A DNA stretch of 64,000 nucleotides from Macrostomum lignano (lineage: Eukaryota). The stretch spans positions 62,001 through 126,000 of the forward strand of contig NIVC01001561.1 of NCBI GenBank assembly GCA_002269645.1, given 5' to 3'. Of the stretch, positions 2,971-62,267 are shown piece after piece (the stretch's first letter is position 1; the number at the start of each line of letters is the position of its first letter). The position numbers and the translations under genes are program-made. The notes beneath the pieces are model-generated. The model ran no database searches. It worked only from the letters and a program-made list of their open reading frames with translations, and was not told the origin of the DNA.

Positions 2971-9686
<6,716 letters not shown>

Positions 9687-12476: not shown

Positions 12477-14481
<2,005 letters not shown>

Positions 14482-15415
14482 CTCTGTCATGAACTAAATA
14501 TTTCATTTATCTCTTTAACAACGCTGACAAAAGCTGATGGTTACTACTAATAGTAACCCCTATTGAGTGGGATCTTATGCTTGCTGTTTCAAATAAAGTT
14601 TAAAAACCTTCCAATTTAAATTTCTTTATACTTAATTTTCAAGTTAAAACTTAAGCCCTTAATTTATAAATTCCCACTTCCATGAACTTTCAAAGTGCAA
14701 TTTTTTAGGGTTGCAAAATTTTTTTGTGTCTTAGTATCGTTCGAAGGTCATCACTATGGGACCATGATCACGTGGCTATCAAGGGTGATAGTCGATTAAA
14801 GAATCAGAGCAGAATACAGTCAGAGGCAAAGCGTCCTTTTCGAAGCTAATCGGGAAATGAAAAATCGAACAACGTTGTCACGAATTGAAGTTCCGTCCGA
14901 TGAGAGACCGGACATTTCGTTCTCTGCAATCCCATTGTATTCCTGTAATCCCATTGACAGCAGTCTCACTTCTTTCTCTCGTTTTTTGCTTCGTTGCGCT
15001 TCTTTATTTTATCTCTTATAGTTGAGCTATATAGTTGTAGTTGCTATTAAGAATAAATTAGCAAAGTATGAATTGTTGGTATATTCGGCGCCCTCTGGCT
15101 TTTTCATTATCGCCCACAAAGTATTATTGTGATTGTACCATAGACTATGTGGCTGAGTTATACGAACGCATGAGCTGCGTTGATGAATTACGCTCGTATG
15201 GGCCATGGGGTGTGGGTGTCAACCATAGACATCATGATTTAATGAGCAATATGTATGGCCGTTTTGTATTGCCATATACTAGTAACTCCTGTAGTCTGTG
15301 GCCCACCTCTGCCCAGAAACGCGGAAGTTATGAATATTAAATCGAAGCAGGCAGTCCTTTTGCAGCACTATAGTTACATATTTAGCCAGCAGCTGACACT
15401 GCCAATAACCGCACG

Positions 15416-17359
<1,944 letters not shown>

Positions 17360-17399
17360 GATCTGATCGAGTATTTGCTGTTGTTTAGCGCATTTCTGG

Positions 17400-18425
17400 C
17401 TTTTTTCACTCCTGTCACTCTGCCCTCAATCTTCTGTCACCATTCTTTCACTCATGTCATCCTTTTTTCACACTCTCTGTCACTCTCTTTTCACTCCTTC
17501 TGTCACTATCCTTTCACTCCATCTGTCACTGACCTTTCACTCTGTCTGTCACTATCCTTTCACTCTGTCTATCACTATCCTTTCACTCTATCTGTCACCA
17601 TCCTTTCACTCCATCTGTCACTAACCTTTCACTCTATCTGTCACTGACCTTTCACTCTATCTGTCACCATCCTTTCACTCCATCTGTCACTGACCTTTCA
17701 CTCTGTCTATCACTATCCTTTCACTCTATCTGTCACTGACCTTTCACTCTATCTGTCACCATCCTTTCACTCCATCTGTCACTGACCTTTCACTCTGTCT
17801 ATCACTATCCTTTCACTCTATCTGTCACTGACCTTTCACTCTATCTGTCACCATCCTTTCACTCCATCTGTCACTGACCTTTCACTCTGTCTATCACTAT
17901 CCTTTCACTCTATTTGTCACTATCCTTTCACTCTATCTGTCACCATCCTTTCACTCCATCTGTCACTGACCTTTCACTCTGTCTGTCACTATCCTTTCAC
18001 TCTGTCTGTCACTATCCTTTCACTCTGTCTGTCACTATCCTTTCACTCTGTCTGTCACTATCCTTTCACTCCATCTGTCACTGACCTTTCACTCTGTCTG
18101 TCACTATCCTTTCACTCTGTCTGTCACCATCCTTTCACTCCATCTGTCACTGACCTTTCACTCTGTCTGTCACTATCCTTTCACTCTGTCTGTCACTATC
18201 CTTTCACTCTGTCTGTCACTATCCTTTCACTCTATCTGTCACTATCCTTTCACTCCATCTGTCACTGACCTTTCACTCTGTCTGTCACTATCCTTTCACT
18301 CTATCTGTCACTATCCTTTCACTCCATCTGTCACTGACCTTTCACTCTGTCTGTCACTATCCTTTCACTCTGTCTGTCACTATCCTTTCACTCTGTCTGT
18401 CAGTATCCTTTCACTATATCTATCA
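17400..18425. repeat. ~23-bp minisatellite (CACTCTGTCTGTCACTATCCTTT)
   Basis: Seen directly. Confidence 0.95.
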
Positions 18426-18930
18426 CTCTTTTCTCCAAAAGAAATCACTCTTATGTTCCAAAAGACCTCGTTAAAGCCAGTCAAGGCCTCCCATGCTGTG
18501 ATTTGCAGCCCCATTTTCACACAGACCGTTACAAAAATATTAGCTTTAAATTTTCTCGCTATTCAAAAAATACTACGATAGTCTGGGGAGACTTTTATGC
18601 TCTCTGCCCTCGGCTTTTTTTAAATAAATCATTTTCTATTCTGGATTTCATTTAGAAGAAATATAAAATGCTTTTTTTCTCAAAAGTTTGACTCAGAAAG
18701 GAGCTGAAGTGAATTGGCCTATTATTTGGCATCCGCCCCGATTAAACTGTAAATAACCTGGCTGAAATTTATGACAGTTCATCAACCAGTTTGTTGGATC
18801 ATATTTGATGCAGCGATTTCCATAATTGGGCCGGGGCTGTTGCCCCCAGGACCCCGGGTCCTGCACGCAATGGCGTGGTGAACTATCTGTGCAGTATGAG
18901 ACTGGTATGGCCCTTATCCCAACCAGCGAT

Positions 18931-19075
18931 GCTCACACCTGCCTCCCCTGGCGGGCTGATAGCTAAAGAGACTCTGTCTCCTGATTTTCACCTTGCAAGG
19001 CGCACTTCGAAGGGTACTCGTCCCGTGGGTGTTAAGGCAGGCTCTCGGGCCTTGCCGAGCTAATTCGTTGGCGCC
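18931..19075 (+). ncRNA. Candidate HDV-like self-cleaving ribozyme in the LINE 5' UTR
   Basis: Manual fold: P1 GCTCAC/GTGGGT, P2 CGAA/TTCG, P3 GGG/CCC, L3 TACTCGT, P1.1 AC/GT, P4 GGCAGGC/GCCTTGCC, J4/2 CTAA. Not computationally verified. Confidence 0.55.
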
Positions 19076-19306
19076 GGGTCCTGGTGTGACCATATAAACG
19101 CACCCTCTAATGTCCCAGTGTAACTCCGTGCTGATGGACGCTTGGCCAGGGAGTAGTCTGGTCGCTAACGGTTCCCCTTGCGCTTTTGGGTCCCCCCGCA
19201 GGGTGGTATTTCGCTTTTTGGGGGCCTGCCGCTTGGTTTGGGGTTGCGGCCTTGCGGCTCTTTGCCTGTGTTCTGCAGGAAGTCCCACCTTTTTTAATTC
19301 CAGCCA

Positions 19307-20827
19307 ATGGCTTCTAACCGAAGTACCCAACCGGCTGTGGATGACACAGTGCCTCCGGCCTCGGCTGGGGCCGTGGACTCCGCGGCCATACCACCTGCTA
19401 CCATCGGGGACGCCTCGGCGAGACCCGTGGAGCCAACTCTGAGCGGTGCCTCCGAGAAGACACCTGCTACTCCAGCTGCCAAGCAGCTGAGCACCACCTC
19501 TGGAGCTGCCCGCCGTGGACTTAACAAGGCGAGGCGGGCCAAGGAGGGCGGAAGCCTAACCGGCGCCAGGGGCCAACGGCCCGCGGCAGCGGAAGCTTCC
19601 CAATCTGGGGCGGTGGCGGAAGAGGGCCTCGAGCCCACTGAAGCCCCTGTCCAGGATGGGGAGGCCGATGCAGCCGGGAGGGTGGACAGCCCACCTGAAG
19701 AAAGCTCCACTGACCCCCGGGCCTCCTACGCTGATGCGGCAAAGAGGCAACCGGCGGTTGTCATCCTGGGAAAGGACGCGCGCCTGTCTCCCGATCAGCT
19801 GAAGCAGGTGAGAGGTGCCGTTGATGGCCTCCTGTGGAAGCAAACTCTGAAGGGCACGCCTCTGAACATTCATTCGAATGCGACGAGGGACTCGTGCCTT
19901 CTCATTTGGCCCAGTGATGCTGACTCGGGTCGGCGGCTCCTTGAGCTGCTGCCCGAGCAGAGCTGGGACCTCAACCTAGCCTTCTGCAGAGAGGACGAAC
20001 GCCCCCGGACCAAGAGGCATCGAATCTGGGTTCCGGCCAGGAGCGTCGTTACCTCTGCTGACGAGCTCCGGAAAGGACTGCTAGCAGTCAACCGGGAGCT
20101 TCCCGCCGCGGGCCTAGTGGTGCATGACACCCTTAAGCGCACCGACGGCACTGGCTTCACAGCCATCCTGGGGCTGTCGGACGCCTGGATGAGGCGCTAT
20201 CCGCACGGCAGCTTCATCAACGTCGGCCTTTGGAAGCTGCGTATCCGCTCCTACGAGGCCGACCCTCCCCGTGGTGGTGAGCAGGGCGGGCGGAATGCCG
20301 AAGCAGCCGGGGCCGTGGCGCGAGCTTCTGCTCAGGCTGCCAAAGCAAACCGCCCCGCCCGGCAGCACGGCCGCGCGGGTAAAGCCGAGCGCGCTGCTGA
20401 GGGCGGAGGAGACCGACGCCCGGCACGCAGCACCAAGCGACGCGGCCTGTACCAGCGTGCAGCTGAGGCAGTCCGTACCGCCAAAATCACCCAGCTGAGG
20501 AGAGAGGTCGCCGGGACGCCTAGGCGCACCAGTTCGTCCAGGGAGGGTGGGGATGTCCCAGCTGGGCCCAACCCCTCGGGGCAGGGCCGACTGGAGACGG
20601 ACCCGCCTGCCCAGGCGGCTGGCTGCTCCAGGGCATTGGGCCAGTCTGAAGCGGAGGACCCCATGGCTGGTGGGCGAAGGGCGGCGAACGCTGCCTATTG
20701 CCTTCCGACCAACCGGGGGCCTTTTGCTGAAGAAGAGCCCATGGACACCGGTGACCCCGACCCGAAGCTGGTGAGCGCCGAGGAGGAGGAGGAACTCCTG
20801 GCGACTGCAACACCCGATCTGCACTGA
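19307..20827 (+). CDS. LINE ORF1 (506 aa; central region resembles DUF4780-type Loa ORF1; no CCHC knuckle seen)
   Basis: Intact ORF directly upstream of ORF2; SYADAAK..VVIL..LSPDQL..V pattern recalled from Loa ORF1s. Confidence 0.85.
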   Translation: MASNRSTQPAVDDTVPPASAGAVDSAAIPPATIGDASARPVEPTLSGASEKTPATPAAKQLSTTSGAARRGLNKARRAKEGGSLTGARGQRPAAAEASQSGAVAEEGLEPTEAPVQDGEADAAGRVDSPPEESSTDPRASYADAAKRQPAVVILGKDARLSPDQLKQVRGAVDGLLWKQTLKGTPLNIHSNATRDSCLLIWPSDADSGRRLLELLPEQSWDLNLAFCREDERPRTKRHRIWVPARSVVTSADELRKGLLAVNRELPAAGLVVHDTLKRTDGTGFTAILGLSDAWMRRYPHGSFINVGLWKLRIRSYEADPPRGGEQGGRNAEAAGAVARASAQAAKANRPARQHGRAGKAERAAEGGGDRRPARSTKRRGLYQRAAEAVRTAKITQLRREVAGTPRRTSSSREGGDVPAGPNPSGQGRLETDPPAQAAGCSRALGQSEAEDPMAGGRRAANAAYCLPTNRGPFAEEEPMDTGDPDPKLVSAEEEEELLATATPDLH

Positions 20828-23800
20828 TGCCAGCGGCTACCTGGTGTCTGCAGATCAACACCCAGCACTGCGTGGCGGCGTCAGTCAACCTGATGCGCAC
20901 GACAGAGCAACAGCTTCCGGGCCTGGTCTTCGTACAGGAGCCCTGGATGACTAAAGGTAAGCCAAATAATGTGCCATCTGACTACCACTGTTTTTGCATG
21001 GCGGACTCTCAGCCTCGCCCAAGATCTCTGGTCTTTGCTGCAAAAGCTTTTGAAGCATGGATGAGACCTGATCTCTCGACTGGGGACATCTGTGTTGTTC
21101 AAATCAATAACCTCATTCCAAATAAACCTGCGCTGGTAGCATCTGCCTATTTCCCAGGCGATGCCCCAGTAGTCTGCGACGCACTAGTCAACCCCATTGA
21201 CTATGCCGCGTCCCGACGGTTCGAGCTGCTCATTGCAGGGGATGTGAACGCACACCACCTGCATTGGGGCAGCAAGAACACCAATAACAGAGGCGAGGAG
21301 CTGCTGGCCTACGTCAGCAGCACAAACCTCAATTTCTGTAACGTGGGCAATGCACCAACGTTCAATAATGGGCGGTGGGCCGAAGTCATCGACACCACCA
21401 TCGCCTCACCCGGACTGCTTTCCGCAGTCACGGGCTGGCGAGTGTGGGACGAGGACTCGCTCTCGGACCACCGCTTTATCCGCTTTTGCATTGGGCCGAC
21501 CAAGCAAAAGCCTAAAGTCACTTGGAGTCGGAACGTCAGGAACACCGATTGGGCCGCCTTTGGCTCGAAGCTGAGCCGCGGCCTTCGGGATCTTGACCCC
21601 CCCAGTGACCTCTCTGACTGCCAGGTGATGGATGATCTCGCCTCCTCCCTGGGCGGGGCGATCACCACTGCCTTTGAAGCAGCCTGCCCTCTAAAGGCCT
21701 ATAAAGGCAAGAAATCTGCTCCCTGGTGGAACCCAGAGCTCGGGGCCCTTCGGCGCCGAGCCAGGACCCTCCAAAGGCGAGCACTCAAAACCAAAGACCC
21801 ATCTGATATAGAGGCCTACACCCGTGCGATCCACGAGTTTAAGGGCCAAGTCAGAAGGGCCAAGACGGCCAAGTGGCGCCAATATTGCGAAGGGCTTGAG
21901 GGCTCTCGCCCCGTAGCCCGCGTGGTTAAGGCACTCACTAATGACCGTTTTTCTAAACTCTCTGTTGTGAAGAGACCTGATGGCTCGGTCACAGAGAGTT
22001 CGGAAGATACTCTAGAGCTCATGCTCAACCGTTTTTTCCCTAAATCTCCGACTCAGCAGGGCCCGCCCGACCACACAGTGGGAGGGCAAGGCCTAGCAAA
22101 GTCTATGATCACCAAAGACCGCATTATTAGAGCGGCAAGGTCCTTTAACCCGTTCAAGGCGCCTGGGCCCGACGGCATCTACCCAGCGTTCTTGCACGAG
22201 GCGGTAAAAAACCACCGCTTCCTGGATCTGCTCTGTCGTCTCCTTCGAGCTTGTGTGGAGCTGGGCTATGTACCAGTTGCGTGGAGAGAGGCCCGGGTGG
22301 TCTTTATCCCCAAGCCTGGAAAGAGCGACTACCAATCGGTGAAGGCCTTCAGGCCTATCAGCCTCACCTCTTTCTGCCTCAAGCTCCTCGAGAGGTTGGT
22401 GCTTTGGCGCCTACTTTCGGTCGAGCTGAAGCGCTTCCCACTCTCGCAGAACCAGCACGCCTTCCGCGCGGGCAGGTCTACCGAGAGTGCTCTCCATGTC
22501 ATTGTTGACTTCCTGGAGAGGGCCGTTCTTGGCAGCGGCTTTGCCCTCTCGCTTTTCCTGGACATTGAGGGGGCCTTCGACAACGTCATCTTCGAGGCCT
22601 TTTGCAGAGCCCTGGAATCCAGGGCCACGCACCCTCACCTTGTCCGGTGGATCATGTTCATGATCCGAAACCGCACTGTTGTGGCCCACCTGAACGGCAG
22701 CTCTCTTTCGGTGCCTGTCCTGAAAGGGGGCCCCCAGGGCGGCGTTCTCACCCCCGTTCTCTGGAACATGGTCATGGATGAGTTGCTTTGCAGTGATCTC
22801 CACGACCCCATTCTCAAGGTGGGCTATGCCGATGATGTGACCGCGATATGCGCGGGCCCCTCGGTTGATACCATCAGAGACCTTCTGCAGGGCTTTCTGG
22901 GACGAGCGGAGCGTTGGGCAAACCAATGTGGCCTTAGACTCTCAGAGTCGAAAACCACAGCAGTCATGTTTACCAACAAACTGCTCTGGACCATTAAGCC
23001 CCTCACCCTCTATGGAAAGAATATTTCCATGGAGAAGCAGGTCCGCTGCCTGGGCCTCACTCTGGACCACAGGCTTAACTGGACTCCGCACATTCAAACT
23101 AAAGCCAAAAAAGCCCTGGCTGTCCTGGCTCAGATCAGGCGCGCCGTGGGCACCACCTGGGGGCTCACCCCCAGGAAGCTGTGGTGGATTTACACTGCCA
23201 TCATCCGCCCCTCGATCAGTTACGCCAGCCTCGTGTGGGCTAGCGGCCTGAGCGTCAAGAGCAACCTCGACGCTCTCTACAAAATCCAGGGCAGAGCCTG
23301 CCGCATGACTATGGGCGCTCCACCCTCTACTCCTTTTGAAGGCATGAATGCCTTCCTCTGTGCCCCTCCTTTGGATATATATATCAAAGGAGAGGCGGCG
23401 AAGAGCACCCGGCGTCTTCTGGATGCTGGGGTGGCCTTCAAGAAAGTGCGGGCCTTTAAGAAGCGGTCGCTTATCCCGCACTCTGACCTCTGCCTCAAGG
23501 CTCTCGAGGAGTGTGGCGGGCTCAACATCCTCACGGACTCGATCCCAGCCACCCTTCTCCTGAGCCAAAGGTATAAGGTCACCATTCAGCCTCGACACGA
23601 GGCGAGTGACAGCTGGAGCGATTCTGAAGTCCACTGTTACACTGACGGCTCTATGAGGCATGGTCGTTCAGGCTTCGGAGCTTGCGTCTTCTTTAAGGGA
23701 GAAGTGGTGTGGAGCTACTCCCAACACACTGGGCTCAACTCCAGTGTTTTTCAGAGCGAGGTGCTTGCCATCAGCTCCTGCGCGGCAGAGCTGCGCCGAA

Positions 23801-24528
23801 GGCAGCTTGGCGGCCGGAAATTTATTTTTCACTCTGACAGCCAAGCTGCCCTTCGGGCCCTCTGCCGCAGCACCGCCAGCTCCAGGTCCGTCCTGGACTG
23901 CAACACCCAGCTCAACGGGCTTGCGCTAGGCAACCAAGTGGAGCTCAGATGGATCCCGGGCCACGCCGGCTTCCTCGGCAACGAGCGCGCTGACCTGCTG
24001 GCCAAGGCTGGCTCCGCCGGCGCGTTGCTGGGACCGGGCCCGGGAGCCCCCATCCCCGCCTCGGTGATCAATTCCCGCGTTAAGCGCTGGGCTGACTCCG
24101 AGCATCTCCGCAGGTGGCACGACACCCGGAATTGTAGGCAATCCCGTGCTGCCGTCCCCTGCCCCTCTCCTCTCCTGCGTAGAGCCCTCCTCAGGCTCAA
24201 CCGCAGAGACCTCAGAGCAGTTAGCATGGCCCTCTCCGGGCATGGCTGCTTCTCTCGCCACCGTTTCCTTCAGGGCCAAGTACCCGAGGAGCGGTGCCCC
24301 TTCTGCCGCTCAGGCAGTGAAAACGCCGAGCATTTTATCTGCCACTGCCCGGTTTTCACCAGGGCCAGGCTTACTCACCTCGGGCCAAACCCGGTTCTCT
24401 CCGACGTTTGCAGGCCCGAGAGCATCCCGCTGCTCGCCCGGTACCTCAGGGACACCGGACGAGCTGATTTCTTCCCCACCGTCGGTGAGGAGGACCGCGC
24501 TGCAGGCGAGACCGACGGGTCCCCCTGA
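20827..24528 (+). CDS. LINE ORF2: AP endonuclease, reverse transcriptase, RNase H and C-terminal Zn knuckle (1233 aa)
   Basis: APE: VQEP, GDVNAHH, SDHRFI. RT: KAPGPDG, FRPISL, LDIEGAFD, PQGGVL, YADD. RNase H: YTDGS, SDSQAAL, WIPGHAG, NERAD. Knuckle: CPFC..ENAEHFICHC. Confidence 0.97.
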   Translation: MPAATWCLQINTQHCVAASVNLMRTTEQQLPGLVFVQEPWMTKGKPNNVPSDYHCFCMADSQPRPRSLVFAAKAFEAWMRPDLSTGDICVVQINNLIPNKPALVASAYFPGDAPVVCDALVNPIDYAASRRFELLIAGDVNAHHLHWGSKNTNNRGEELLAYVSSTNLNFCNVGNAPTFNNGRWAEVIDTTIASPGLLSAVTGWRVWDEDSLSDHRFIRFCIGPTKQKPKVTWSRNVRNTDWAAFGSKLSRGLRDLDPPSDLSDCQVMDDLASSLGGAITTAFEAACPLKAYKGKKSAPWWNPELGALRRRARTLQRRALKTKDPSDIEAYTRAIHEFKGQVRRAKTAKWRQYCEGLEGSRPVARVVKALTNDRFSKLSVVKRPDGSVTESSEDTLELMLNRFFPKSPTQQGPPDHTVGGQGLAKSMITKDRIIRAARSFNPFKAPGPDGIYPAFLHEAVKNHRFLDLLCRLLRACVELGYVPVAWREARVVFIPKPGKSDYQSVKAFRPISLTSFCLKLLERLVLWRLLSVELKRFPLSQNQHAFRAGRSTESALHVIVDFLERAVLGSGFALSLFLDIEGAFDNVIFEAFCRALESRATHPHLVRWIMFMIRNRTVVAHLNGSSLSVPVLKGGPQGGVLTPVLWNMVMDELLCSDLHDPILKVGYADDVTAICAGPSVDTIRDLLQGFLGRAERWANQCGLRLSESKTTAVMFTNKLLWTIKPLTLYGKNISMEKQVRCLGLTLDHRLNWTPHIQTKAKKALAVLAQIRRAVGTTWGLTPRKLWWIYTAIIRPSISYASLVWASGLSVKSNLDALYKIQGRACRMTMGAPPSTPFEGMNAFLCAPPLDIYIKGEAAKSTRRLLDAGVAFKKVRAFKKRSLIPHSDLCLKALEECGGLNILTDSIPATLLLSQRYKVTIQPRHEASDSWSDSEVHCYTDGSMRHGRSGFGACVFFKGEVVWSYSQHTGLNSSVFQSEVLAISSCAAELRRRQLGGRKFIFHSDSQAALRALCRSTASSRSVLDCNTQLNGLALGNQVELRWIPGHAGFLGNERADLLAKAGSAGALLGPGPGAPIPASVINSRVKRWADSEHLRRWHDTRNCRQSRAAVPCPSPLLRRALLRLNRRDLRAVSMALSGHGCFSRHRFLQGQVPEERCPFCRSGSENAEHFICHCPVFTRARLTHLGPNPVLSDVCRPESIPLLARYLRDTGRADFFPTVGEEDRAAGETDGSP

Positions 24529-24807
24529 GCGACACCACTTCAACGGAAGTCGTTGGTCGCCAGGGGCTAGCGGAATGGGCGGTCTCCTCCGCCTCCTCGC
24601 TGCATCCGCCGGACGCCCCCTGCAGCTAAGTCAAAGTAAGTTCCATAATTGGTCACAAATCAGCTTCGAAGCTCTTGATGACGGCTCGTCCAATCAGATT
24701 TGAGCAGAGGATCTACTTTGGAATATAATTTGACCCTTAAATTTCGAACTTTGCCCCCCATGCGACTCTCAGCCTCTCCACAGTCAAATTAAAGGCAACA
24801 GGTAAAA

Positions 24808-26397
24808 ATGTTCCTTCATCTAAGACTTGCCACAACGCTACTGTTGCTATTGGTTACCGCTGGCGCCCTCCAGTTGGAAACGCAGCGGGATGCTGATGAA
24901 GAAGGTGAGGCAACCGCGCGAGTTCAATGGGCGCATCAAAGTTTTAACGGGACAATCGCTTCAAAGGGCAATAGCGATACTTTTAGCGATACGTTACTGT
25001 AGCAACACGATAAATTGCTAGACCTCTGCTGAACCTCCGCCTGCTACCCATCTTTCAACTTTTTCCTCTCCTCTTCTCTCCTCTCCTCTCCTCTTTTCTC
25101 CTCTCCTTTCCTCTCCTCTCCTCTCCTCTCCTCTCCTCTCCTCTGCTCTCCTCTGCTCTCCTCTGCTCTCCTCTCCTCTCCTCTCCTCTCCTCTCCTCTC
25201 CTCTCCTCTCCTCTCCTCTCCTCTCCTCTCCTCTCCTCTCCTCTCCTCTCCTCTCCTCTCCTCTCCTCTCCTCTCCTCTCCTCTCCTCTCCTCTCCTCTC
25301 CTCTCCTCTCCTCTCCTCTCCTCTCCTGTCCTCTCCTTTTAACTCCATCCTGTTCTTCAAAGCAGCTCGACTAATTGGAATTTATAATTTGACCGCAACT
25401 TTTGAAGCCGTGGTTTTATAAATAGATCTCAATTTATGTGGAATTTTTGCAACTCTTTCATCTGATCTCTGACCCCCAACCTCTATCCTTACTTTGAGAA
25501 GAGCAAGTTTGTTTGAGAAGCATTCCTATTCCCTAAATTGCAGGCAGTTTCAACTACAAAGTGCAAACGACCACGGGCCAGGTGAAAAAACGGTACAAAA
25601 CCTACGGTGAGTATTGAGTAATTGGGCAAATTAGGACAGAATGTACTTTTCTATGAAATCCAATCATGACTGTGTGCATGTAGATAGTGAGAATTTACAA
25701 TATTATTGTATGGATTGATTAGTAGCCAGTGCTTTATCAGTGGCGGATTAATTAGTAACCAATTAAGCATGACAGCGTCAATTATAGGAATCTCACTGAG
25801 AGAGGTTATTGTATCCGTTGAAAGACTGCTCAGAAATAAAAGAGCAAATACGACGTAAATATATATATAGTACATCATATAAGCGCCCCCAAATCACCCT
25901 ACGTATAAGCCCCCCAAAGCACCCTTATAAGCGCTCCTAAAGCACCCTTATAAGCGTCCCAAAGCACCCTTACAAGCGCCCCCAAATTACCCTGATAAGC
26001 GCCCCCAAATTACCCTTATAAGTGCCCCCAAATTACCCTTATAAGCGCCCCCAAATTACCCTGATAAGCGCCCCCAAAGCACCCTTACGTATAAGCCCCC
26101 CTAAAGCACCCTTATAAGCGCTCCCAAAGCACCCTTCTAAGCGCCCCTAAAGCACCCTTATAAGCGTCCCAAAGCACCCTTCTAAGCGCCCCTAAAGCAC
26201 CCTTATAAGCGTCCCAAAGCACCCTTACAAGCGCTCATAAATTACCCTGATAAGCGCCCCCAAAGCACCCTATAAGCGCCCGCAAAAAATTACCCGCAGA
26301 CATCCAGTTCGGCAGCCAGATTCCGTGGGCCAGCGAGGACATAATCTACGCTAGGGGATTCAAGCCCCTGCGCGGCAAAAGAAGCAATCTTTGGTGA
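24808..26397 (+). CDS. Neuropeptide prohormone, 85 aa; exons 24808-24904, 25544-25606, 26300-26397
   Basis: Spliced translation MFLHLRLATTLLLLLVTAGALQLETQRDADEEGSFNYKVQTTTGQV-KKR-YKTYDIQFGSQIPWASEDIIYARGFKPLR-G-KR-SNLW*. It has a signal peptide, basic cleavage sites and a G-KR amidation signal. Two phase-1 GTGAG...CAG introns. Confidence 0.8.
25065..25337. repeat. (CTCTC)n pentamer microsatellite in prohormone intron 1
   Basis: Seen directly. Confidence 0.97.
25878..26285. repeat. ~23-bp minisatellite (ATAAGCGCCCCCAAAGCACCCTT) in prohormone intron 2
   Basis: Seen directly. Confidence 0.92.
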
Positions 26398-26824
26398 AGC
26401 AACGAAGCCACTGGCTTAGCCGATATTCAGGATACCCTAGCAACCGAAGACTTAACTAAGAATTTCAACGATTAAAACTAAAACAATTTTTTTTATTTTC
26501 TCATTTCTAGCTGACGCGAAAAGGGCAATACAGAAATAAATCACCCGAGAAGCTGCGGCTTCATCATTCTGGCAGCCAACGTGCTCTGGCTCAGGCTAAC
26601 ACACAGGCAACGAAATTATAGTCCTCGCGCTGAGCACCTGAACTTTGACTGTACTTTTAACTTCGTTCGGAAAATATTATCTCAGTTGAGAAAAGGATCA
26701 GTTTTGCTATTTCTTTTTTGAATTTGAAAAAAATTGTCTACTTACCTATTTATAAGTAGTGTGCTGCGAAAAATGAACTCTAACTAACTTAACTTTAAAA
26801 TTTAAATTACAATGACAGATAAGA

Positions 26825-27665
26825 TTGTAGGAGTGACACACGTGAAGTTGTAGGAGTGACACTGAAATGCTGTACGAGTGACACAGGTGAGGCTGTAGGA
26901 GTGACACACATGAAGCTGTAGGAGTGACACAGATGAAGCTGTAGCAGTGAAACAGATGAAGCTGTAGGAGTGACACAGATGAAGCTGTAGGAGTGACACA
27001 GATGAAGCTGTAGGAGTGACACAGATGAAGCTGTAGGAGTGACACAGATGAAGCTGTAGCAGTGACACAGATGAAGCTGTAAGAGTGACACTGATGAAGC
27101 TGTAGGAGTGACACAGATGAAGCTGTAGGAGTGACACTGATGAAGCTGTAGGAGTGACACAGATGAAGCTGTAGGAGTGACACAGATGAAGCTGTAAGAG
27201 TGACACTGATGAAGCTGTAGGAGTGACACAGATGAAGCTGTAGGAGTGACACAGATGAAGCTGTAGGAGTGACACAGATGAAGCTGTAGGAGTGACACTG
27301 ATGAAGCTGCAAGAGTGACACTGATGAAGCTGTAGGAGTGACACAGATGAAGCTGTAGGAGTGACACAGATGAAGCTGTAGCAGTGAAACAGATGAAGCT
27401 GTAAGAGTGACACTGATGAAGCTGTAGGAGTGACACAGATGAAGCTGTAGGAGTGACACTGATGAAGCTGTAGGAGTGACACAGATGAAGCTGTAGGAGT
27501 GACACAGATGAAGCTGTAAGAGTGACACTGATGAAGCTGTAGGAGTGACACAGATGAAGCTGTAGGAGTGACACAGATGAAGCTGTAGGAGTGACACAGA
27601 TGAAGCTGTAAGAGTGACACTGATGAAGCTGTAGGAGTTACACTGATGAAGCTGTAGCAGTGATA
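26825..27665. repeat. 23-bp minisatellite (GAGTGACACAGATGAAGCTGTAG)
   Basis: Seen directly. Confidence 0.96.
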
Positions 27666-28044
27666 CATGGAAAGCTGAAGTTCAGTGCCCGATACTGCAA
27701 ATGCTGCCTAAGATGCTTAGCGACCAGAGGATGAAGTGTCTTACTTGTAAAATGCGAATAGATGAAGGCTCGGAGAGTCAAACAGACCTGTCGTACAGAG
27801 CGCCTTTCAAAGTCAAGAGGAACTGCTTGACATAACAAGTTCTGGCACGTAGCGAACTGTTGAGGGGAGCCGAACTCCCCGGGCAAAAAGCCTGGGGTCT
27901 GTTGCTGGGGGGGGGCAATCAGCAGCCGTTGAAATGGCAATTCGGTAGATCTGCACTTCTGGTGTGTTTCCGTTTTCTCGTACGAGTACACAGGGTGCGA
28001 CCTGATTTTATATTTGTGTTGAATACAAAAGCTACGCAATAGAA

Positions 28045-28362
28045 AGTCAGTAGTGTCAGTAGTGTCAGTCAGTAGTGTCAGTAGTGTCAGTCAGTAGTAT
28101 CAGTAGTGTCAGTAGTGTCAGTAGTGTCAGTCAGTAGTATCAGTAGTGTCAGTAGTGTCAGTAGTGTCAGTCAGTAGTGTCAGTAGTGTCAGTCAGTAGT
28201 ATCAGTAGTGTCAGTAGTGTCAGTAGTGTCAGTCAGTAGTGTCAGTAGCGTCAGCAGTGCCAGTAGTGTCAGTCAGTAGTGTCAGTAGCGTCAGCAGTGC
28301 CAGTAGTGTCAGTCAGTAGTGTCAGTAGTGTCAGTAGCGTCAGCAGTGCCAGTAGTGTCAGT
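28045..28362. repeat. 9/13-bp minisatellite (GTCAGTAGT)
   Basis: Seen directly. Confidence 0.93.
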
Positions 28363-29024
28363 ATTTTTTGTGCTGCAAGCTATTAGGAATGGCAAAGTTT
28401 AACAAAGCATCACAGAGTATAACAAAATACATAATTTTCAAAATGATGCAGGGCCATTACAATATTACAGGATCTTATATCTTCAAAGGAGATAAAGAAA
28501 GTCGTTGGTTTGGAAAAGTACATGATGACCGGATATAGGGAATCCTACTATAGATTTTATCTGCCGAAAAATACGGACCGATTCATTCTTAGGGGAAGTC
28601 AGCTTAAACTGCACCAGCAGTGCAGGGATCAGGTGCGTGTTCTTCCCTGCAAACGCTATCCAATTATCCCGAACCCCAATCTTGGGCCTATTGGGATTTT
28701 CAATTACTCGGCTTGTTCAGATTTTCGTTGCGGGGCTAACTAGCAAATGGATAATGTATATGCAGGCCTGCCAGATGGTCTTCGCGTGTCTTTCCTGCTT
28801 GAAGACACTGCCGAGATGCAGCTTGAGAGATTCTTGAACCGTCAGATCCGCATAGCATTTCATGCGACTCTGACGGTCGAAGCAGGCGTTGGATAAAAAT
28901 GTGTAAATGAACAGCCGCCATCGTACCAGATGCAATAAGTTCACGTCTCTAAATGTTCGAGCGTATGACTGCGATTCACTAAGCTGCAACCTCGGCGTGG
29001 CTGTAAAGTGACTTGATTGAATAA

Positions 29025-29695
29025 GAGAAGGGAGAGGAGAGGAGAGGAGAGGAGAGGAGAGGAGAGGAGAGGAGAGGAGAGGAGAGGAGAGGAGAGGAGA
29101 GGAGAGGAGAGGAGAGGAGAGGAGAGGAGAGGAGAGGAGAGGAGAGGAGAGGAGAGGAGAGCAGAGCAGAGCAGAGCAGAGGAGAGGAAAAGAGAGGAGA
29201 GGAGAGGAGAGGAGAGGAGAGGAGAGGAGAGGAGAGGAGAGGAGAGCAGAGCAGAGCAGAGGAGAGGAAAAGAGAGGAGAGGAGAGGAGAGGAGAGGAGA
29301 GGAGAGGAGAGGAGGGGAGATTATGGGAGAGGAAATTACAGGGAGAGGAGAGGAGAGGAAAAGAGAGGAGAGCAAGAGCAGAGGAGAGGAGAGGAGAGGA
29401 GATGACGGGAGAGATAAAGGGAGAGCAAGAGCAGAGGAGAGGAGAGGAGAGGAGATGACGGGAGAGATAAAGGGAGAGCAAGAGCAGAGGAGAGGAGAGG
29501 AGAGGAGATGATGGGAGAGATGAAGGGAGAGCAAGAGCAGAGGAGAGGAGAGGAGAGGAGATGATGGGAGAGATGGAGGGAGAGCAAGAGCAGAGGAGAG
29601 GAGAGGAGAGGAAATGACGGGAGAGATGAAGGGAGAGGAGAGCAGAGCAGAAAAAAGGAGAGGAGAGGAGAGGACAGGAGAGGAGAGGAGAGGAG
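29025..29695. repeat. (GGAGA)n microsatellite grading into a longer purine-rich unit
   Basis: Seen directly. Confidence 0.95.
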
Positions 29696-30377
29696 TGCGA
29701 TAAAGAGGACACTGTCCGCAGCGGCCACATCAAGAAGCCACCTGCCAACTGTGCTGTCAATCACAGCTGCAAGATTTTTTCAACTCCCGTGTTCAATTAA
29801 CCCCTGGTGAGCTCCTCAGTTTTTGGTATTTAACAAAAATTTTAGGTCAAATCTCCTCCCCTCCTCGGTGGCGTCAGACACGCACTGAATCAAAGTGCGA
29901 TCCCATTTCCCCTCTAAAATATCAAAACCTTGGCTGCAGCAGGCGCACTTATTCTGCAGTTTATCTGGGCCAATCAATCTACCCGCCCGGATATTCCGCA
30001 GGGTAAACTGCGGTTGCGCCAAAGCTTTCGACACCGGCAGCTGCCTGCCTGCCCAACCACAATTCCCCTCGAACCAGCAGGCCGCATGCGCGGTTTTTTC
30101 TCGGCAGTTTTTTTTGTTTTTTGGGAGGCTAAAACTGTACAAATAATTCCCATATCCTTCCCTGAGAGCCATGCGGTGGCAGGGAAATACGCGAACAGCC
30201 CCAAAGTCTTCTTCATTTGCAAAAAGCAGACGGCCAAACAACCAGAAGCTCGCAGAAAATATTTCCACAATTGCATTCTCTCAATAAAAAAGCATTCATT
30301 GCTGTCGAAGATTTTCGAGTGCAACAGTTAGAGAAATTTTCGACGAAATTACCTGCAATTAACTTAACAGCGTCTCC

Positions 30378-33300
30378 ATGGTAACCAATATTGTTGGAGG
30401 CCAGCAGATGATCTGCTTTCTATTTCTCTTGAGCCTCGGTGGTGGATCAGTGTTTGGGGGGTCTCAGCCGGCATCTCCATCAGATGGCAAACTGCTGAAA
30501 ACATTTGACCGGAATATCACACTGCAACCGACTTCATCCACCCAGCAACCGACTTCATCCACCCAGCAACCGACTTCATCCACCCAGCAACCGACTTCAT
30601 CCACCCAGCAACCAACTTCATCCGCCAGCAACCGACTTCATCCGCCCAGCAACCGCCGAATTCCACCCAGCAACCAACTTCATCCGCCCAGCAACCGACT
30701 TCATCCACCCAGCAACCAACTTCATCCGCCCAGCAACCGACTTCATCCGCCCAGCAACCGCCGAATTCCACCCAGGAACCGCCGAATTCCACCCAGCAAC
30801 CGCCGAATTCCACCCAGCAACCGCCGAATTCCACCCAGCAACCTCCGAATTCCGCCCAGCAACCGACTTCATCCGCCCAACAACCGCCGAATTCCACCCA
30901 GCAACCGACACAGTCCGCCAAGCAACCGACGCAGCAACCGAACGCTGCTGCTGACAAATACCTGTTGGTACTCGATGCCGGAAGCACCGGCACCCGGATC
31001 AACGTGATGCACTTCCGGCCGGATCCCAGCCACTCGGCCGGCCTCCGCCTGGTCCGCCTAGACTACGAGAGCGTCCGGCCGGGCCTGTCCGCTTATCGCC
31101 ATTTCCCCAGCGGGTGGCCGGCAACCTGGCGCCGCTGTTGGCCTTCGCCAGCGAGCGGGTGCCAGCGGAGGCGCCGCCGCCACAGGCGGTCCTGGCGGCC
31201 ACGGCCGGCCTGCGCAGCCTTCAGCGCTCCGACCAGCTGCGGCTGTTGAAGGCGGCGAAGCGGGCGCTGTCAGACGCGGCAGGCAAGGGCGGGAGGCTGG
31301 GTTCGGTGTCGGCCCGAGTGCTGACGGGCACTGAGGAGGCTCTGTACGGCTGGCTGGCTGTGAACTTTCTCATGAATTCGCTGGGTCGCCATGGCAACAC
31401 CTACGGACTGTTGGACATGGGCGGCGGGTCAACGCAGATCGTTTTCCAGCCGGAATGGCCGGCCATGTCCGATGAGTTTGTGGCGAATTTTCGGACGCTG
31501 GGGGAAGAGTGTTCGTGCTGCATCAGCATAGCTACCAGACTCTGGGCATGTCCAAGGTGCGTTTAGAGGGTTAATTATAATATGTAATCAGGTAATTATT
31601 GTGACACAAATGCAGCTAATTATTGTGGCACAAATGCAGCTAATTATTGTGGCACAGGTGAGGCTAATTATTGTGACACAGGTGGGGGCTAATTATTGTG
31701 ACACAGGTGAGGCTAATTATTGTGACACAGGTGGGGGCTAATTATTGTGACACCAGGTGAGGCTAATAATTGTGACACAGTTGAGGCTAATTATTGTGAC
31801 ACAATTTAGTCTAATTATTGTGACACAGTTGAGGCTAATTTTTGTAACACAGGTGAGGCTAATTATTGTGACACAGGTTAGGCTAATTATTGTGACACAG
31901 GTGAGGCTAATTATTGTGACACAGGTTAGGCTAATTATTGTGACACAGGTGGGGCTAATTATTGTGACACAGTTGAGGCTAATTATTGTGAAACCAGGCG
32001 AGGCAGATTTTGGTGACACATTTGAGACATTTGCTCCGCGATGCAGATTTTATTGATAATTTAGCATTTCAAAATAACATTTATTAAAAAATCTAAGCAT
32101 TATAATTCTAGCTACTTACAGTAGCGTGAATGCGTATTGTATTGTTTTCGAAAAAATTTCCCCGACAATTTCAGGTGACGCTCGACCTGCTCGGGCACAG
32201 CGAGGATAGCGGCGATGGACACTTTGTGACGCCCTGCCTGGCGGCGAATTTCTCGGCCAACTTCAGCTTCGGTGCCATCACGGTTGTGGTGCAGGGCGAC
32301 AGTCAGGTTGACGACGCTGAAAGGTACGACCTGTGCTCACAGCAGCACGAGCACCGGCTGCAGGCTGCCAGGGTGCACAGGTGAGACTGATTTATAGATA
32401 AGGGGGGTGCACAGGTGAGACTGATTTATAGATAAGGGAGGTGCACAGTTGAGACTGATTTATAGATAAGGGAGGAGCACAGTTGAGACTGATTTATAGA
32501 TAAGGGGAGCGCAGGTGAGACTGATTTATAGATAAGGGGGGTGCACAGGTGAGACTGATTTATAGATAAGGGAGGTGCACAGTTGAGACTGATTTATAGA
32601 TAAGGGAGGAGCACAGTTGAGACTGATTTATAGATAAGGGGGAGCGCAGGTGAGACTGATTTATAGATAAGGGGGAGCGCAGGTGAGACTGATTTATAGA
32701 TAAGATAAGGGGGGAGCACAGGTGAGACTGATTTATAGATAAGATAAGGGGAGAGCACAGGTGAGACAGTCGATAATAGCTTGAGGTTCCTTCGGCCACT
32801 CCCAGGCTGCCCGTGCCGATCTCGGAGCGGTTCGTGGCCGTCTCCTCGTTTTACTACTCGGCCAACACGTACTACTCTCGGTGGCCGAGTGCCGCCCAGC
32901 CAGTGCCTGCCAACCTGAGCGTAGCGTACCTGATCTCGGCTGCCCGGACGGCCTGCGCCAGCCCAGTCAGCACTGGACGGTACGCGCCCTATGCCTGTAT
33001 CGGCCTGGTGCACATCTCCAACCTGCTGTCCAAAGGCTACGGTTTCCCGCCGGAGCAGCGACTGTTCGTCACGGACAAAATCGATGGCCACTCGGCCAAC
33101 TGGCCGCTGGGCCTGGCCGTTCATTGGCTGACCGGCGACGGCAGAGGTCGAGGCGGCGGCGGCGACGGCGGCAGCGGCAGAAGCGGTAGCAGCGACGTTG
33201 GTGTCCTGAAGGACAATGCCGCTTTTGGAGAGGAAGACGACATCGGCGCTTCGAGTTTTGAAGTGGCCGGAGACGAAAGTCGAGATGAAGGCAGTCGCCG

Positions 33301-36127: not shown

Positions 36128-37248
36128 ATGCCGGATAGCGGCTTGCCCAGGCTGCCCCCGGAGCTGCTAGCGAAGATTTTCCTGCGCCTGACAGCAGTCT
36201 CCGATCTGCTGGCCTGCGCAGCCGCCAGTCGCGAGTTCGAATCCGTGATCGGCTCGGCGCACTTTTTTTTATCCTACGCGCGAAGACGCAGCCTCCTGCG
36301 CCTCATCGATAGCCGGGGCTGGCAGGCGCTCAGCGGGCACAGTCTGGCACAGGGCGGCGCAGGCTTCTGCTGCTCCTGCGGCTTGGACTTCCTGCTGACT
36401 GGCGAGGAGCTGCGAGCGGCCGGAACTGAGGCGGACTGCCGTCAGCTGGTGGACGGCCTGGCTCGAGCGAGGCGACAGGGCTACCTGCACATGGACATCC
36501 GTGGCGTGGAGGTGCTCACCATGGCTGAGGACCCGGGCCTGTTCGCCACTCTGCCTGAGGGGCGCCTGTCACTGGCTGATGCGGCCGGATGTGGTGCGAC
36601 TGTTGAACTCCAGACCGTCTACGCCTGCTGCAGCGTTGGTGAGGCTTGAGACTTGGAGTCTGCGCGTGACACACTGCAACAGATGCAGTGTTTTGTTCTG
36701 TACGATAAATCTGTCGAAATTATTTTTCCTTTTCAGACCCCCTGCTAACCCGCGTGGCCTACAGCATCGTGGCTAATTCAAACCCCGGCGAAACTCAGGC
36801 CGACATCCGACGCTATCGCTGGTTCAGCAACCGAGTAGCGCTGTCTGACTTCCTGAGTTCGTATGCTAACCCAGATGCTGCTGATGGCTCCATCAACGAG
36901 CTCAGTCGGGAAGCTCGTCGTCTACTGGCCGAGTGTCACGCCGTCCAGCTGCTGCTGCTGCCGAACCAACTTCAGCGACACAAACTGGACAAGCTCGTCA
37001 GGCGGGTCATGGCGCCCTTTGCCGCCGTTCCAGGTCGACGACCTCGGCACCCGGTGCCGCTGCTGCTGGCAATAGTCGGCGAATCGAAGTACCAGAGCGG
37101 ATCCGATGCTCGGCATCTGGTGCGACGAGCTGGTCTGGACGACCTTGAAGGCCACGCTTGGCTGGTAGAACAGCCGAACTGCAGAGAGGACTGGACAGCC
37201 ATGCTGCGGTGGCAGCTGGATCACGTGCTGAAAGACATGTTCCTTTAG
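36128..37248 (+). CDS. FBXO4: F-box protein with degenerate small-GTPase-like domain, FBXO4-like, 340 aa; exons 36128-36638, 36737-37248
   Basis: F-box LPRLPPELLAKIFLRL..DLLACAAASREF. C-terminal PLLLA, LVRRAGLDDLEGHAWLVEQ and AMLRWQLDHV parallel the recalled FBXO4 PLLVL, LAHELHLNLLNHPWLVQD and GIEWILEEV. Phase-1 GTGAG...TTTCAG intron. Confidence 0.7.
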
Positions 37249-40211
37249 TCTGCCCGAATCTGTGCTGACTGAGTTCAGGAAGACATGTTCCTTTAGTCTG
37301 CCCGAATCTGTACTGACTGAGTGCAGGAAGACATGTTCCTTTAGTCTGCCCGAATCTGTACTGACTGAGTGCAGGAAGACATGTTCCTTTAGTCTGCCCG
37401 AATCTGTACTGACTGAGTGCAGGAAGACATGTTCCTTTAGTCTGCCCGAATCTGTGCTGACTGAGTGCAGGAAGACATGTTCCTTTAGCCTGCCCGAATC
37501 TGTACTGACTGAGTGCAGGAAGACATGTTCCTTTAGCCTGCCCGAATCTGTGCTGACTGAGTGCAGGAAGACATGTTCCTTTAGTCTGCCCGAATCTGTA
37601 CTGACTGAGTGCAGGAAGACATGTTCCTTTAGCCTGCCCGAATCTGTACTGACTGAGTGCAGGAAGACATGTTCCTTTAGCCCGCCCGAATCTGTGCTGA
37701 CTGAGTGCAGGAAGACATGTTCCTTTAGCCTGCCCGAATCTGTGCTGACTGAGTGCAGGAAGACATGTTCCTTTAGCCTGCCCGAATCTGTACTGACTGA
37801 GTGCAGGAAGACATGTTCCTTTAGCCTGCCCGAATCTGTGCTGACTGAGTGCAGGAAGACATGTTCCTTTAGCCTGCCCGAATCTGTGCTGACTGAGTTC
37901 AGGAAGACATGTTCCTTTAGCCTGCCCGAATCTGTGCTGACTGAGTGCAGGAAGACATGTTCCTTTAGCCTGCCCGAATCTGTGCTGACTGAGTGCAGGA
38001 AGACATGTTCCTTTAGCCTGCCCGAATCTGTGCTGACTGAGTGCAGGAAGACATGTTCCTTTAGCCTGCCCGAATCTGTGCTGACTGAGTGCAGGAAGAC
38101 ATGTTCCTTTAGCCTGCCCGAATCTGTGCTGACTGAGTGCAGGAAGACATGTTCCTTTAGCCTGCCCGAATCTGTGCTGACTGAGTGCAGGAAGACATGT
38201 TCCTTTAGCCTGCCCGAATCTGTGCTGACTGAGTGCAGGAAGACATGTTCCTTTAGCCTGCCCGAATCTGTGCTGACTGAGTGCAGGAAGACATGTTCCT
38301 TTAGCCTGCCCGAATCTGTGCTGACTGAGTGCAGGAAGACATGTTCCTTTAGCCTGCCCGAATCTGTGCTGACTGAGTTCAGGAAGACATGTTCCTTTAG
38401 CCTGCCCGAATCTGTGCTGACTGAGTGCAGGAAGACATGTTCCTTTAGCCTGCCCGAATCTGTGCTGACTGAGTGCAGGAAGACATGTTCCTTTAGCCTG
38501 CCCGAATCTGTGCTGACTGAGTGCAGGAAGACATGTTCCTTTAGCCTGCCCGAATCTGTGCTGACTGAGTGCAGGAAGACATGTTCCTTTAGCCTGCCCG
38601 AATCTGTGCTGACTGAGTGCAGGAAGACATGTTCCTTTAGCCTGCCCGAATCTGTGCTGACTGAGTGCAGGAAGACATGTTCCTTTAGCCTGCCCGAATC
38701 TGTGCTGACTGAGTTCAGGAAGACATGTTCCTTTAGCCCGCCCGAATCTGTGCTGACTGAGTGCAGGAAGACATGTTCTTTTAGCCTGCCCGAATCTGTG
38801 CTGACTGAGTTCAGGAAGACATGTTCCTTTAGCCTGCCCGAATCTGTACTGACTGAGTGCAGGAAGACATGTTCCTTTAGCCTGCCCGAATCTGTACTGA
38901 CTGAGTGCAGGAAGACATGTTCCTTTAGCCTGCCCGAATCTGTGCTGACTGAGTGCAGGAAGACATGTTCCTTTAGCCTGCCCGAATCTGTGCTGACTGA
39001 GTGCAGGAAGACATGTTCCTTTAGCCTGCCCGAATCTGTGCTGACTGAGTGCAGGAAGACATGTTCCTTTAGCCTGCCCGAATCTGTGCTGACTGAGTGC
39101 AGGAAGACATGTTCCTTTAGCCTGCCCGAATCTGTGCTGACTGAGTGCAGGAAGACATGTTCCTTTAGCCTGCCCGAATCTGTGCTGACTGAGTTCAGGA
39201 AGACATGTTCCTTTAGCCGCCCGAATCTGTGCTGACTGAGTGCAGGAAGACATGTTCTTTTAGCCTGCCCGAATCTGTGCTGACTGAGTGCAGGAAGACA
39301 TGTTCCTTTAGCCTGCCCGAATCTGTACTGACTGAGTGCAGGAAGACATGTTCCTTTAGCCTGCCCGAATCTGTACTGACTGAGTGCAGGAAGACATGTT
39401 CCTTTAGCCTGCCCGAATCTGTGCTGACTGAGTGCAGGAAGACATGTTCCTTTAGCCTGCCCGAATCTGTGCTGACTGAGTGCAGGAAGACATGTTCCTT
39501 TAGCCTGCCCGAATCTGTGCTGACTGAGTGCAGGAAGACATGTTCCTTTAGCCTGCCCGAATCTGTGCTGACTGAGTGCAGGAAGACATGTTCCTTTAGC
39601 CTGCCCGAATCTGTGCTGACTGAGTGCAGGAAGACATGTTCCTTTAGCCTGCCCGAATCTGTGCTGACTGAGTGCAGGAAGACATGTTCCTTTAGCCTGC
39701 CCGAATCTGTGCTGACTGAGTGCAGGAAGACATGTTCCTTTAGCCTGCCCGAATCTGTGCTGACTGAGTGCAGGAAGACATGTTCCTTTAGCCTGCCCGA
39801 ATCTGTGCTGACTGAGTGCAGGAAGACATGTTCCTTTAGCCTGCCCGAATCTGTGCTGACTGAGTTCAGGAAGACATGTTCCTTTAGCCCGCCCGAATCT
39901 GTGCTGACTGAGTGCAGGAAGACATGTTCTTTTAGCCTGCCCGAATCTGTGCTGACTGAGTTCAGGAAGACATGTTCCTTTAGCCTGCCCGAATCTGTAC
40001 TGACTGAGTGCAGGAAGACATGTTCCTTTAGCCTGCCCGAATCTGTGCTGACTGAGTGCAGGAAGACATGTTCCTTTAGCCTGCCCGAATCTGTGCTGAC
40101 TGAGTGCAGGAAGACATGTTCCTTTAGTCTGCCTGAATCTGTGCTGACTGAGTGCAGGAAGACATGTTCCTTTAGCCTGCCCGAATCTGTGCTGACTGAG
40201 TGCAGGAAGAC
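37232..40211. repeat. 62 copies of a 48-bp unit (AAGACATGTTCCTTTAGCCTGCCCGAATCTGTGCTGACTGAGTGCAGG), starting in the last codons of the F-box gene
   Basis: The first and last AAGAC are 2975 bp apart, equal to 62x48 minus one 1-bp deletion (~39217). Confidence 0.97.

Positions 40212-40923: not shown

Positions 40924-62267
<21,344 letters not shown>

Follow-up and report, generated by a model that had tools for sequence, protein, structure and literature searches.

A candidate three-exon gene for an amidated-peptide prohormone in the flatworm Macrostomum lignano

The candidate locus and its predicted product

A 64,000-nt stretch of the Macrostomum lignano DV1 genome (hereafter the window) carries, on the (+) strand at 24808-26397, a three-exon reading frame that may encode the small secretory prohormone of an amidated peptide. 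The window corresponds at 100% identity to positions 62001-126000 of M. lignano contig NIVC01001561.1 (assembly Mlig_3_7, GCA_002269645.1); the match was made through the locus of a neighbouring gene, which covers 5416-27359 of the window (21,944 nt). On the contig the candidate occupies positions 86808-88397, and the flatworm origin supposed in the initial annotation is thereby confirmed. The exons comprise 258 nt in total and are separated by two GT..AG introns, both of phase 1. Splicing them reproduces exactly the exon chain and product given in that annotation:

24808-24904, +: exon 1, 97 nt; M1-E32 and the first base of G33; donor GTGAGG
24808-24867, +: signal peptide M1-A20; predicted cleavage TAGA/LQ
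24905-25543, +: intron 1, 639 nt, phase 1; GTGAGG...TTGCAG; (TCCTC)n at 25064-25337
25544-25606, +: exon 2, 63 nt; G33-Y53 and the first base of D54; acceptor TTGCAG, donor GTGAGT
25607-26299, +: intron 2, 693 nt, phase 1; GTGAGT...CCGCAG; C-rich 23-nt minisatellite at 25878-26286
26300-26397, +: exon 3, 98 nt; acceptor CCGCAG; encodes D54-W85 uninterrupted; TGA at 26395-26397
26300-26394, +: parts of exon 3; rest of the 29-mer 26300-26373, Gly79 26374-26376, K80-R81 26377-26382, SNLW 26383-26394

The product is 85 aa long (MFLHLRLATTLLLLLVTAGALQLETQRDADEEGSFNYKVQTTTGQVKKRYKTYDIQFGSQIPWASEDIIYARGFKPLRGKRSNLW, then stop) and divides into the signal peptide MFLHLRLATTLLLLLVTAGA, the acidic spacer LQLETQRDADEEGSFNYKVQTTTGQV, KKR (residues 47-49), the 29-mer YKTYDIQFGSQIPWASEDIIYARGFKPLR (50-78), G79, K80-R81 and the tail SNLW (82-85). 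The signal peptide has a positive charge (R6) in its n-region, a 15-residue hydrophobic core (LATTLLLLLVTAGAL) and A-G-A at -3 to -1, and passes a heuristic test. Exon 2 contributes the acidic spacer, then KKR at 25585-25593, and the first part of the peptide at 25594-25606. Dibasic sites flank the peptide on both sides and Gly precedes the C-terminal one, at the only amidation site of the product. All the formal parts of an amidated-peptide prohormone that had been described for this locus are therefore present.

Each intron consists mostly of tandem repeat. The same build is seen in the annotated upstream neighbour, BOX15_Mlig023789g1, a transcript-based model that ends at 17359 with its own stop and whose one intron, of 621 nt, reads GTGAGA...(CTGT)n...ATGCAG; in the genome as a whole, the mean intron measures 1.1-1.4 kb and tandem repeat makes up 15% of the sequence (PMC5730564). 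Between 24808 and 27000 there are four GTRAG donors, two of which end exons 1 and 2, and position 26300 comes right after the first YAG beyond the C-rich minisatellite. An in-frame TAA lies at 24790-24792, 18 nt 5' of the ATG, so that the frame cannot be extended 5' without another splice, and the base at -3 is A.

Codon usage and an independent gene model

Codon usage was scored with a table trained on the neighbouring gene and on two reading frames of G-protein-coupled receptors (GPCRs), a test independent of the prohormone pattern. The codon log-likelihood of the candidate is 0.006 bits per codon, the mean over 192 null loci being -0.423 (sd 0.132), and its G+C content at third codon positions (GC3) is 0.647, that of the null loci 0.527 (sd 0.05). 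With the best chain taken at each null locus, none of the 192 reaches the candidate in either measure. The other two frames of the candidate score -0.55 and -0.54, compared with 0.01 for the chosen frame. Codon usage thus gives moderate, not decisive, support for a gene.

Of the 1.84 billion proteins searched with HMMER, a single one proved to be a true relative: UniProt A0A1I8JMK5, a 'Myb-like domain-containing protein' of M. lignano. In this protein ...GRFR is followed by LATTLLLLLVTAGALQLETQRDADEEG and then by SFNYKVQTT..., which is the exon 1-exon 2 junction of the candidate (...DADEEG joined to SFNYKVQTT). The model takes exon 2 with the same acceptor and the same donor; it contains candidate residues L7-G33, and 37 residues are common to both. 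In other words, a trained gene finder judged exons 1 and 2 and their junction to be coding, although the model may be an ab initio one without a basis in RNA. Two further HMMER matches, to a bacterial repeat protein and to a fish Ig-repeat protein (VQTPTGSVRKRS against VQTTTGQVKKRY), were set aside as chance matches inflated by repeats.

As a whole A0A1I8JMK5 is chimeric. It comes from the older ML2 assembly and joins segments that correspond to 15416-17359, 24825-25606 and 30387-31004 of the window: it begins with the upstream gene (exon at ~17350), reaches exon 1 through a weak internal AAG acceptor (24824/24825), suffers a frameshift within exon 2, and ends in a minisatellite frame at 30387-31004 (ATDFIHP / QPTSSTQ repeats). 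Its amino-acid variants fit the second copy of the locus in Mlig_3_7, described below, where exon 2 is intact, and its sister ML2 models A0A1I8IWH2, A0A1I8FAJ1 and A0A1I8F8M3 contain frameshifted stretches of the bona fide upstream gene. On these two grounds we attribute the frameshift to an error of the ML2 assembly and reject gene decay as its explanation.

A second genomic copy

The M. lignano DV1 genome is partly duplicated (PMC5730564), and the region of the candidate has a homeologous locus, L002 (NIVC01000041.1:28368-50326, reversed), which lacks the retrotransposon that stands 5' of the candidate in the window. The second copy of the candidate, at NIVC01000041.1:35217-37362 (-), retains the ATG, the frame and the three exons with all their splice sites (four), and its 29-mer and G-KR are unchanged. 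Between the copies the exons differ by 3 substitutions in 258 nt, two of them synonymous, with 0 indels: CTA to TTA (Leu, exon 1), ATT to ATC (Ile, exon 3) and AGC to AGA (S82R, exon 3, past G-KR). Exon 2 is identical, and so are 99 flanking nt. The second copy's intron 1 is without 91 nt (window 25428-25518), and its intron 2 has grown to 1523 nt by repeat expansion. Local unique flanks differ at 32 of 1053 nt and by several indels (exons versus flanks, one-sided Fisher p=0.064). Reading frame, consensus splice sites and processing motifs are thus present in both genomic copies.

Divergence between the copies is patchy across the duplicated region (5951-32000 against L002). It amounts to 0.04% over 2.5 kb of unique sequence within 26801-32000 and to 0.5% at 12477-15415, and rises to 3-5% around 17360-18817 and 24641-26800, a distribution that points to gene conversion or to duplicated blocks with a mosaic past.

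Gene or chance reading frame

How often such a chain would arise by chance was estimated with a scanner for chains of one to three exons that start at an ATG and whose first exon holds a signal-peptide-like core. Donors had to read GTRAG and acceptors YAG, introns had to measure 40-1200 nt, and the product, 50-160 aa long, had to contain the motif [KR][KR]-x(4-40)-G[KR][KR]. On both strands of the window the candidate is the sole chain that the scanner returns. Once five ordinary gene features are demanded as well, 600 simulations leave 5 null loci, or ~0.008 per window. G-KR then has to lie no more than 12 aa from the C-terminus and AATAAA or ATTAAA 30-400 nt past the stop, the ATG needs a purine at -3 and a stop upstream in its frame, and the signal peptide needs a -3/-1 cleavage motif.

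Taking this refined null together with the codon usage, the junction and donor picked by an independently trained gene finder, the frame, splice sites and peptide retained in the second copy, the intron build shared with the annotated neighbour, and an unusually tidy product (strong signal peptide, acidic spacer, stop 4 residues past G-KR), we give a probability of about 0.5 to the reading that the locus is a small unannotated M. lignano gene of three exons for the prohormone of a secreted, amidated peptide, an estimate based entirely on sequence. The alternative that survives best is a chance reading frame, in which unique sequence between minisatellites happens to supply an ATG with a hydrophobic run, donors and acceptors, and no mRNA is made. 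We regard this as possible rather than probable, and it is the explanation against which the observations given so far have to be set.

A number of results weigh against a gene and for such a chance frame. The bare pattern is not beyond chance: order-3 Markov sequences of 64 kb average 0.38-0.43 loci, with one or more in 32% of them, two loci turn up in the reversed window, and 21 kb of unrelated M. lignano DNA (L003) gives 2 that are plainly spurious, one a GPCR transmembrane helix spliced into repeat and the other an antisense frame. The refinements of the criteria were all chosen post hoc, with the candidate already seen. Our own rough estimate of the prior for a true prohormone locus of such build, derived from 51 planarian prohormone genes and a redundant genome of 764 Mb, is 0.002-0.01 per window, which is no larger than the refined null. 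From the same ATG, 320 alternative GTRAG/YAG chains are formally open. The codon score is intermediate when compared with real DNA under relaxed criteria, where chains overlapping genes score 0.15-0.62 and clear noise -0.1 to -0.7. Finally, the window is 42.6% tandem repeat (TRF), and such sequence breeds long spurious frames.

The second copy, though its intact frame counts in favour of a gene, does not show constraint. Locus-wide divergence is 1.07% in unmasked non-coding sequence, 1.36% in the annotated neighbouring coding sequence, which carries 8 amino-acid changes between copies, and 1.2% in the candidate exons. Since all three diverge alike, the copies are too similar, or too young, to reveal constraint, and an intact frame in the second copy is also expected by chance. 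We therefore rejected the two-copy comparison as a test of selection, divergence being patchy along the locus and elsewhere as low as in the exons. The putative promoter and poly(A) motifs are not conserved either: TATAAT reads TAGAAT in the second copy, and AATAAA reads AATATA, with indels, so that both motifs lose weight as evidence.

Searches of records point the same way, with qualifications. Within the annotation and protein records searched, neither a transcript or a read across a junction nor a poly(A) site or a peptide came to light. In both its variants the exact 85-aa product is absent from ~15 billion public proteins; this absence says little, because the matches to the protein of the bona fide neighbouring gene are NCBI, UniRef and MetaClust entries only, with none derived from a transcriptome. 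A word-indexed protein search with the 85-aa product gave no match, a weak negative, as A0A1I8JMK5 escaped the same index. Neither HMMER against the 1.84 billion representatives nor a metagenome scan turned up a homologue beyond the M. lignano genome. GenBank annotates no gene between 17360 and 27359, the candidate locus included. The 'coregenes' annotation dropped transcripts that had no TransDecoder open reading frame or that overlapped repeat annotation (PMC5730564), filters to which an 85-aa frame with repeat-filled introns would fall, and the missing gene is for this reason uninformative.

More generally, in this repeat-rich genome chance alone yields roughly one chain of the form 'signal peptide + KR...GKR' for every two to three windows of 64 kb, and at this rate such calls need RNA evidence.

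A different product from a real transcript

A further alternative is that the locus is transcribed and yields something else, which we consider distinctly unlikely. The product might be a small secreted protein that is neither processed nor amidated, or it might come from another chain, in which exon 2 is skipped, a different 3' exon is used or the 64-aa frame at 24808-25002 stays unspliced; or the exons might be internal ones of the upstream gene, as in A0A1I8JMK5. Many alternative chains are indeed open, and skipping exon 2 (63 nt) preserves the frame and leaves 64 aa; A0A1I8JMK5 itself enters exon 1 from the exon at ~17350. This entry, however, uses a weak AAG acceptor, the transcript-based model of the upstream gene stops well short of it, and in the haplotype of the window a 5.8-kb LINE (long interspersed nuclear element) separates the two. 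A0A1I8JMK5, moreover, runs on into a minisatellite frame and rests on frameshifted ML2 sequence. The arrangement KKR...G-KR, 4 residues before the stop, is typical of an amidated prohormone and so argues for the prohormone reading over an unprocessed protein.

Comparison with known peptide families

No match to a described prohormone emerged from literature strings, Schmidtea prohormone supplements, Pfam or the HMMER search, and to this extent the novelty suggested in the initial annotation has held. In detail, main-text literature searches with fragments of the peptide gave no relevant match, the product matched no Pfam family even at E<=10, and Rfam gave no match over the window. The supplements of Piovani 2023 and Collins 2010 provided no match, parasite npp families lying outside this comparison; the planarian prohormones compared contain no LRG[KR], PLRG or ARGF, and R-amide ends are almost absent from them. 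We found no published catalogue of M. lignano neuropeptides. The further suggestion of an undescribed flatworm peptide family is unsupported: the only relative is a near-identical duplicate in the same genome.

In its architecture the candidate resembles the spp and npp genes of Schmidtea mediterranea (Collins et al. 2010, PMC2953531), which encode a precursor of less than 100 aa in which a signal peptide and a spacer precede a dibasic site, one peptide and G-KR, with a short tail at the C-terminus, and which are also lineage-restricted and easily missed by annotation pipelines. It is unlike them in sequence, and whereas many of the planarian peptides have been confirmed by mass spectrometry, the candidate is known from its sequence alone.

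The proposed relationship to tachykinin-related peptides fails on their defining feature. These peptides need a C-terminal FxGxR-amide and are released as short peptides from multi-copy precursors; the candidate shares the C-terminal Arg-amide with Phe at -5, but its end reads F74-K-P-L-R78, with Pro in place of Gly, and it is a single 29-mer. Natalisin, likewise made as short peptides from multi-copy precursors, has the end FxxxR-amide and is to our knowledge restricted to arthropods. Here the proposed likeness holds in part: FKPLR-amide matches FxxxR-amide literally, a loose motif that carries little weight, and the candidate has a single-copy precursor and comes from a platyhelminth.

Among the other families compared, the neuropeptides Y and F (NPY/NPF) of flatworms resemble the candidate in layout, with one long amidated peptide per small precursor, then G-KR and a short tail. 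Counted from the amide, both also have Pro at -3 and a basic residue at -4 (K-P-L-R in the candidate, R-P-R-F in NPF). The candidate nevertheless ends in K-P-L-R-amide instead of RxR[F/Y]-amide and has no Pfam match, and its 29 aa stand behind a 26-aa spacer, whereas in NPY/NPF the peptide adjoins the signal peptide. The npy genes of vertebrates and planarians have in common an intron that interrupts the codon of the penultimate residue, an Arg (PMC2953531); the introns of the candidate lie in the codons of G33 and D54. With pyrokinin/PBAN (FxPRL-amide) and planarian ppl-1 it has in common an amidated end in which Leu and Arg come after F-x-P, but in the order P-L-R rather than P-R-L. The (T)ARGF-amide end of allatotropin is not found either, as ARGF (71-74) is internal and followed by KPLR instead of Gly and a dibasic site.

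That the candidate is a divergent member of one of these bilaterian families (tachykinin/natalisin, NPY/NPF, pyrokinin or allatotropin) is very improbable: F-K-P-L-R-amide fits the loose FxxxR-amide, ARGF is present, and [K/R]-P-x-x-amide, coming after a stretch prone to form a helix, bears a faint likeness to NPF of flatworms (GRPRF-amide) and to npy-11 (RPRL-amide), an atypical npy of planarians, but the defining features tested for tachykinin, NPY/NPF, pyrokinin and allatotropin fail, and Pfam and HMMER gave no relative among them. Judged by its sequence, the candidate peptide appears to belong to no recognised peptide family.

Proposed processing and a neighbouring receptor

If the locus is a prohormone gene, the signal peptide would be removed after Ala20, and a prohormone convertase of the PC2 or PC1/3 type would cut after K47-K48-R49 and after K80-R81. 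A carboxypeptidase E-like enzyme would trim the basic residues, and peptidylglycine alpha-amidating monooxygenase would convert Gly79 to the C-terminal amide. We infer these steps from the canonical regulated-secretory pathway, which is established. The predicted main product is YKTYDIQFGSQIPWASEDIIYARGFKPLR-NH2, of 29 aa and monoisotopic [M+H]+ 3461.80; an acidic propeptide of 26 aa and the tetrapeptide SNLW (RNLW from the second copy) would be released besides.

Of the two products foreseen in the initial annotation, the 29-aa amide is retained as a prediction, and GFKPLR-amide, by cleavage at R72, seems the less likely. Cleavage at a monobasic Arg is favoured by a basic residue at -4, -6 or -8, and the R72 site has a basic residue at none of these positions.

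The 29-mer amide would signal through a GPCR. An intronless frame at 54616-55698 (+), 28 kb from the candidate, encodes a 360-aa rhodopsin-type GPCR (Pfam 7tm_1, E=8.8e-15), whose closest relative is the M. lignano paralogue BOX15_Mlig025013g6 (42% identity) and whose best solved structure is somatostatin receptor 4, a weak match (E=6.5e-7); its exact product is absent from the public protein collection. The suggestion that this receptor is linked to the peptide finds no backing, as nothing ties the two together and the paralogous GPCR locus (L003) contains no related peptide gene.

Flanking features and genomic setting

Possible regulatory and untranslated features on either side of the candidate, as far as they can be read from the letters, are as follows:

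24690-24735, +: possible core-promoter motifs, CCAAT at 24690-24694 and TATAAT at 24724-24729; read from sequence, putative
24784-24807, +: proposed 5' leader; the AG at 24782-24783 (ctctccacag, then the leader) is a possible cis- or trans-splice acceptor
26398-26560, +: proposed 3' untranslated region; AATAAA at 26535-26540, 138 nt past the stop

Trans-splicing affects 38.8% of M. lignano genes (PMC5730564). The TATAAT motif begins a 12-mer, TATAATTTGACC, itself inside TTGGAAT(T)(T)ATAATTTGACC, of which there are exactly two copies in the 64 kb against 0 expected. Both are on the (+) strand, one at 24724-24735 (84 nt 5' of the ATG) and one at 25383-25394 (in intron 1, 161 nt 5' of exon 2); at the second genomic locus the former of the two carries a mutation. 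The window contains no further copies of the candidate exons or of the unique sequence of the locus.

A full-length non-long-terminal-repeat retrotransposon, the LINE mentioned above, lies at 18830-24640 (+) and ends 167 nt 5' of the candidate ATG; its end is 13 nt upstream of the left flank of the stretch with the promoter motifs. It has an intact ORF1 (19307-20827, 506 aa) and ORF2 (20827-24528, 1233 aa, with endonuclease, reverse transcriptase and RNase H domains) and is bounded by a 12-bp target-site duplication, TTCCATAATTGG, at 18818-18829 and 24641-24652. Its absence from the homeologous locus marks it as a young insertion.

Further upstream are an annotated gene for an 852-aa protein kinase, with exons at 5338-6333 (+) and at L001 1-4271, and an annotated 162-aa gene at ~12477-14481; both are duplicated in L002. 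The tandem repeats of the window form dozens of minisatellite arrays with periods of 4-48 nt, for example a 48-nt unit repeated 62 times at 98% identity (37225-40211), and these arrays yield long spurious open frames of up to 1097 aa.

Implications

If the prohormone reading is correct, the locus would be a gene of an already known kind and not of a new kind. That it is the founding member of a Macrostomum- or flatworm-specific family of long PLR-amide peptides seems to us unlikely, though less so than that the locus is transcribed into a different product. Constraint and a family would be established by orthologues in which the peptide (DIQFGSQIPWASEDIIYARGFKPLRGKR) and G-KR are kept while the spacers have diverged. 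The 'coregenes' annotation of Mlig_3_7 is blind to short frames with repeat-holding introns, and further peptide genes may be hidden in the same way. A PLR-amide peptide of this kind would have no counterpart among the described planarian and parasite prohormones and could be the ligand of an orphan flatworm rhodopsin-type receptor. If the gene is real, M. lignano, a flatworm model that regenerates and is open to transgenesis, would gain an orphan amidated peptide, and with it a candidate ligand for receptor deorphanisation.

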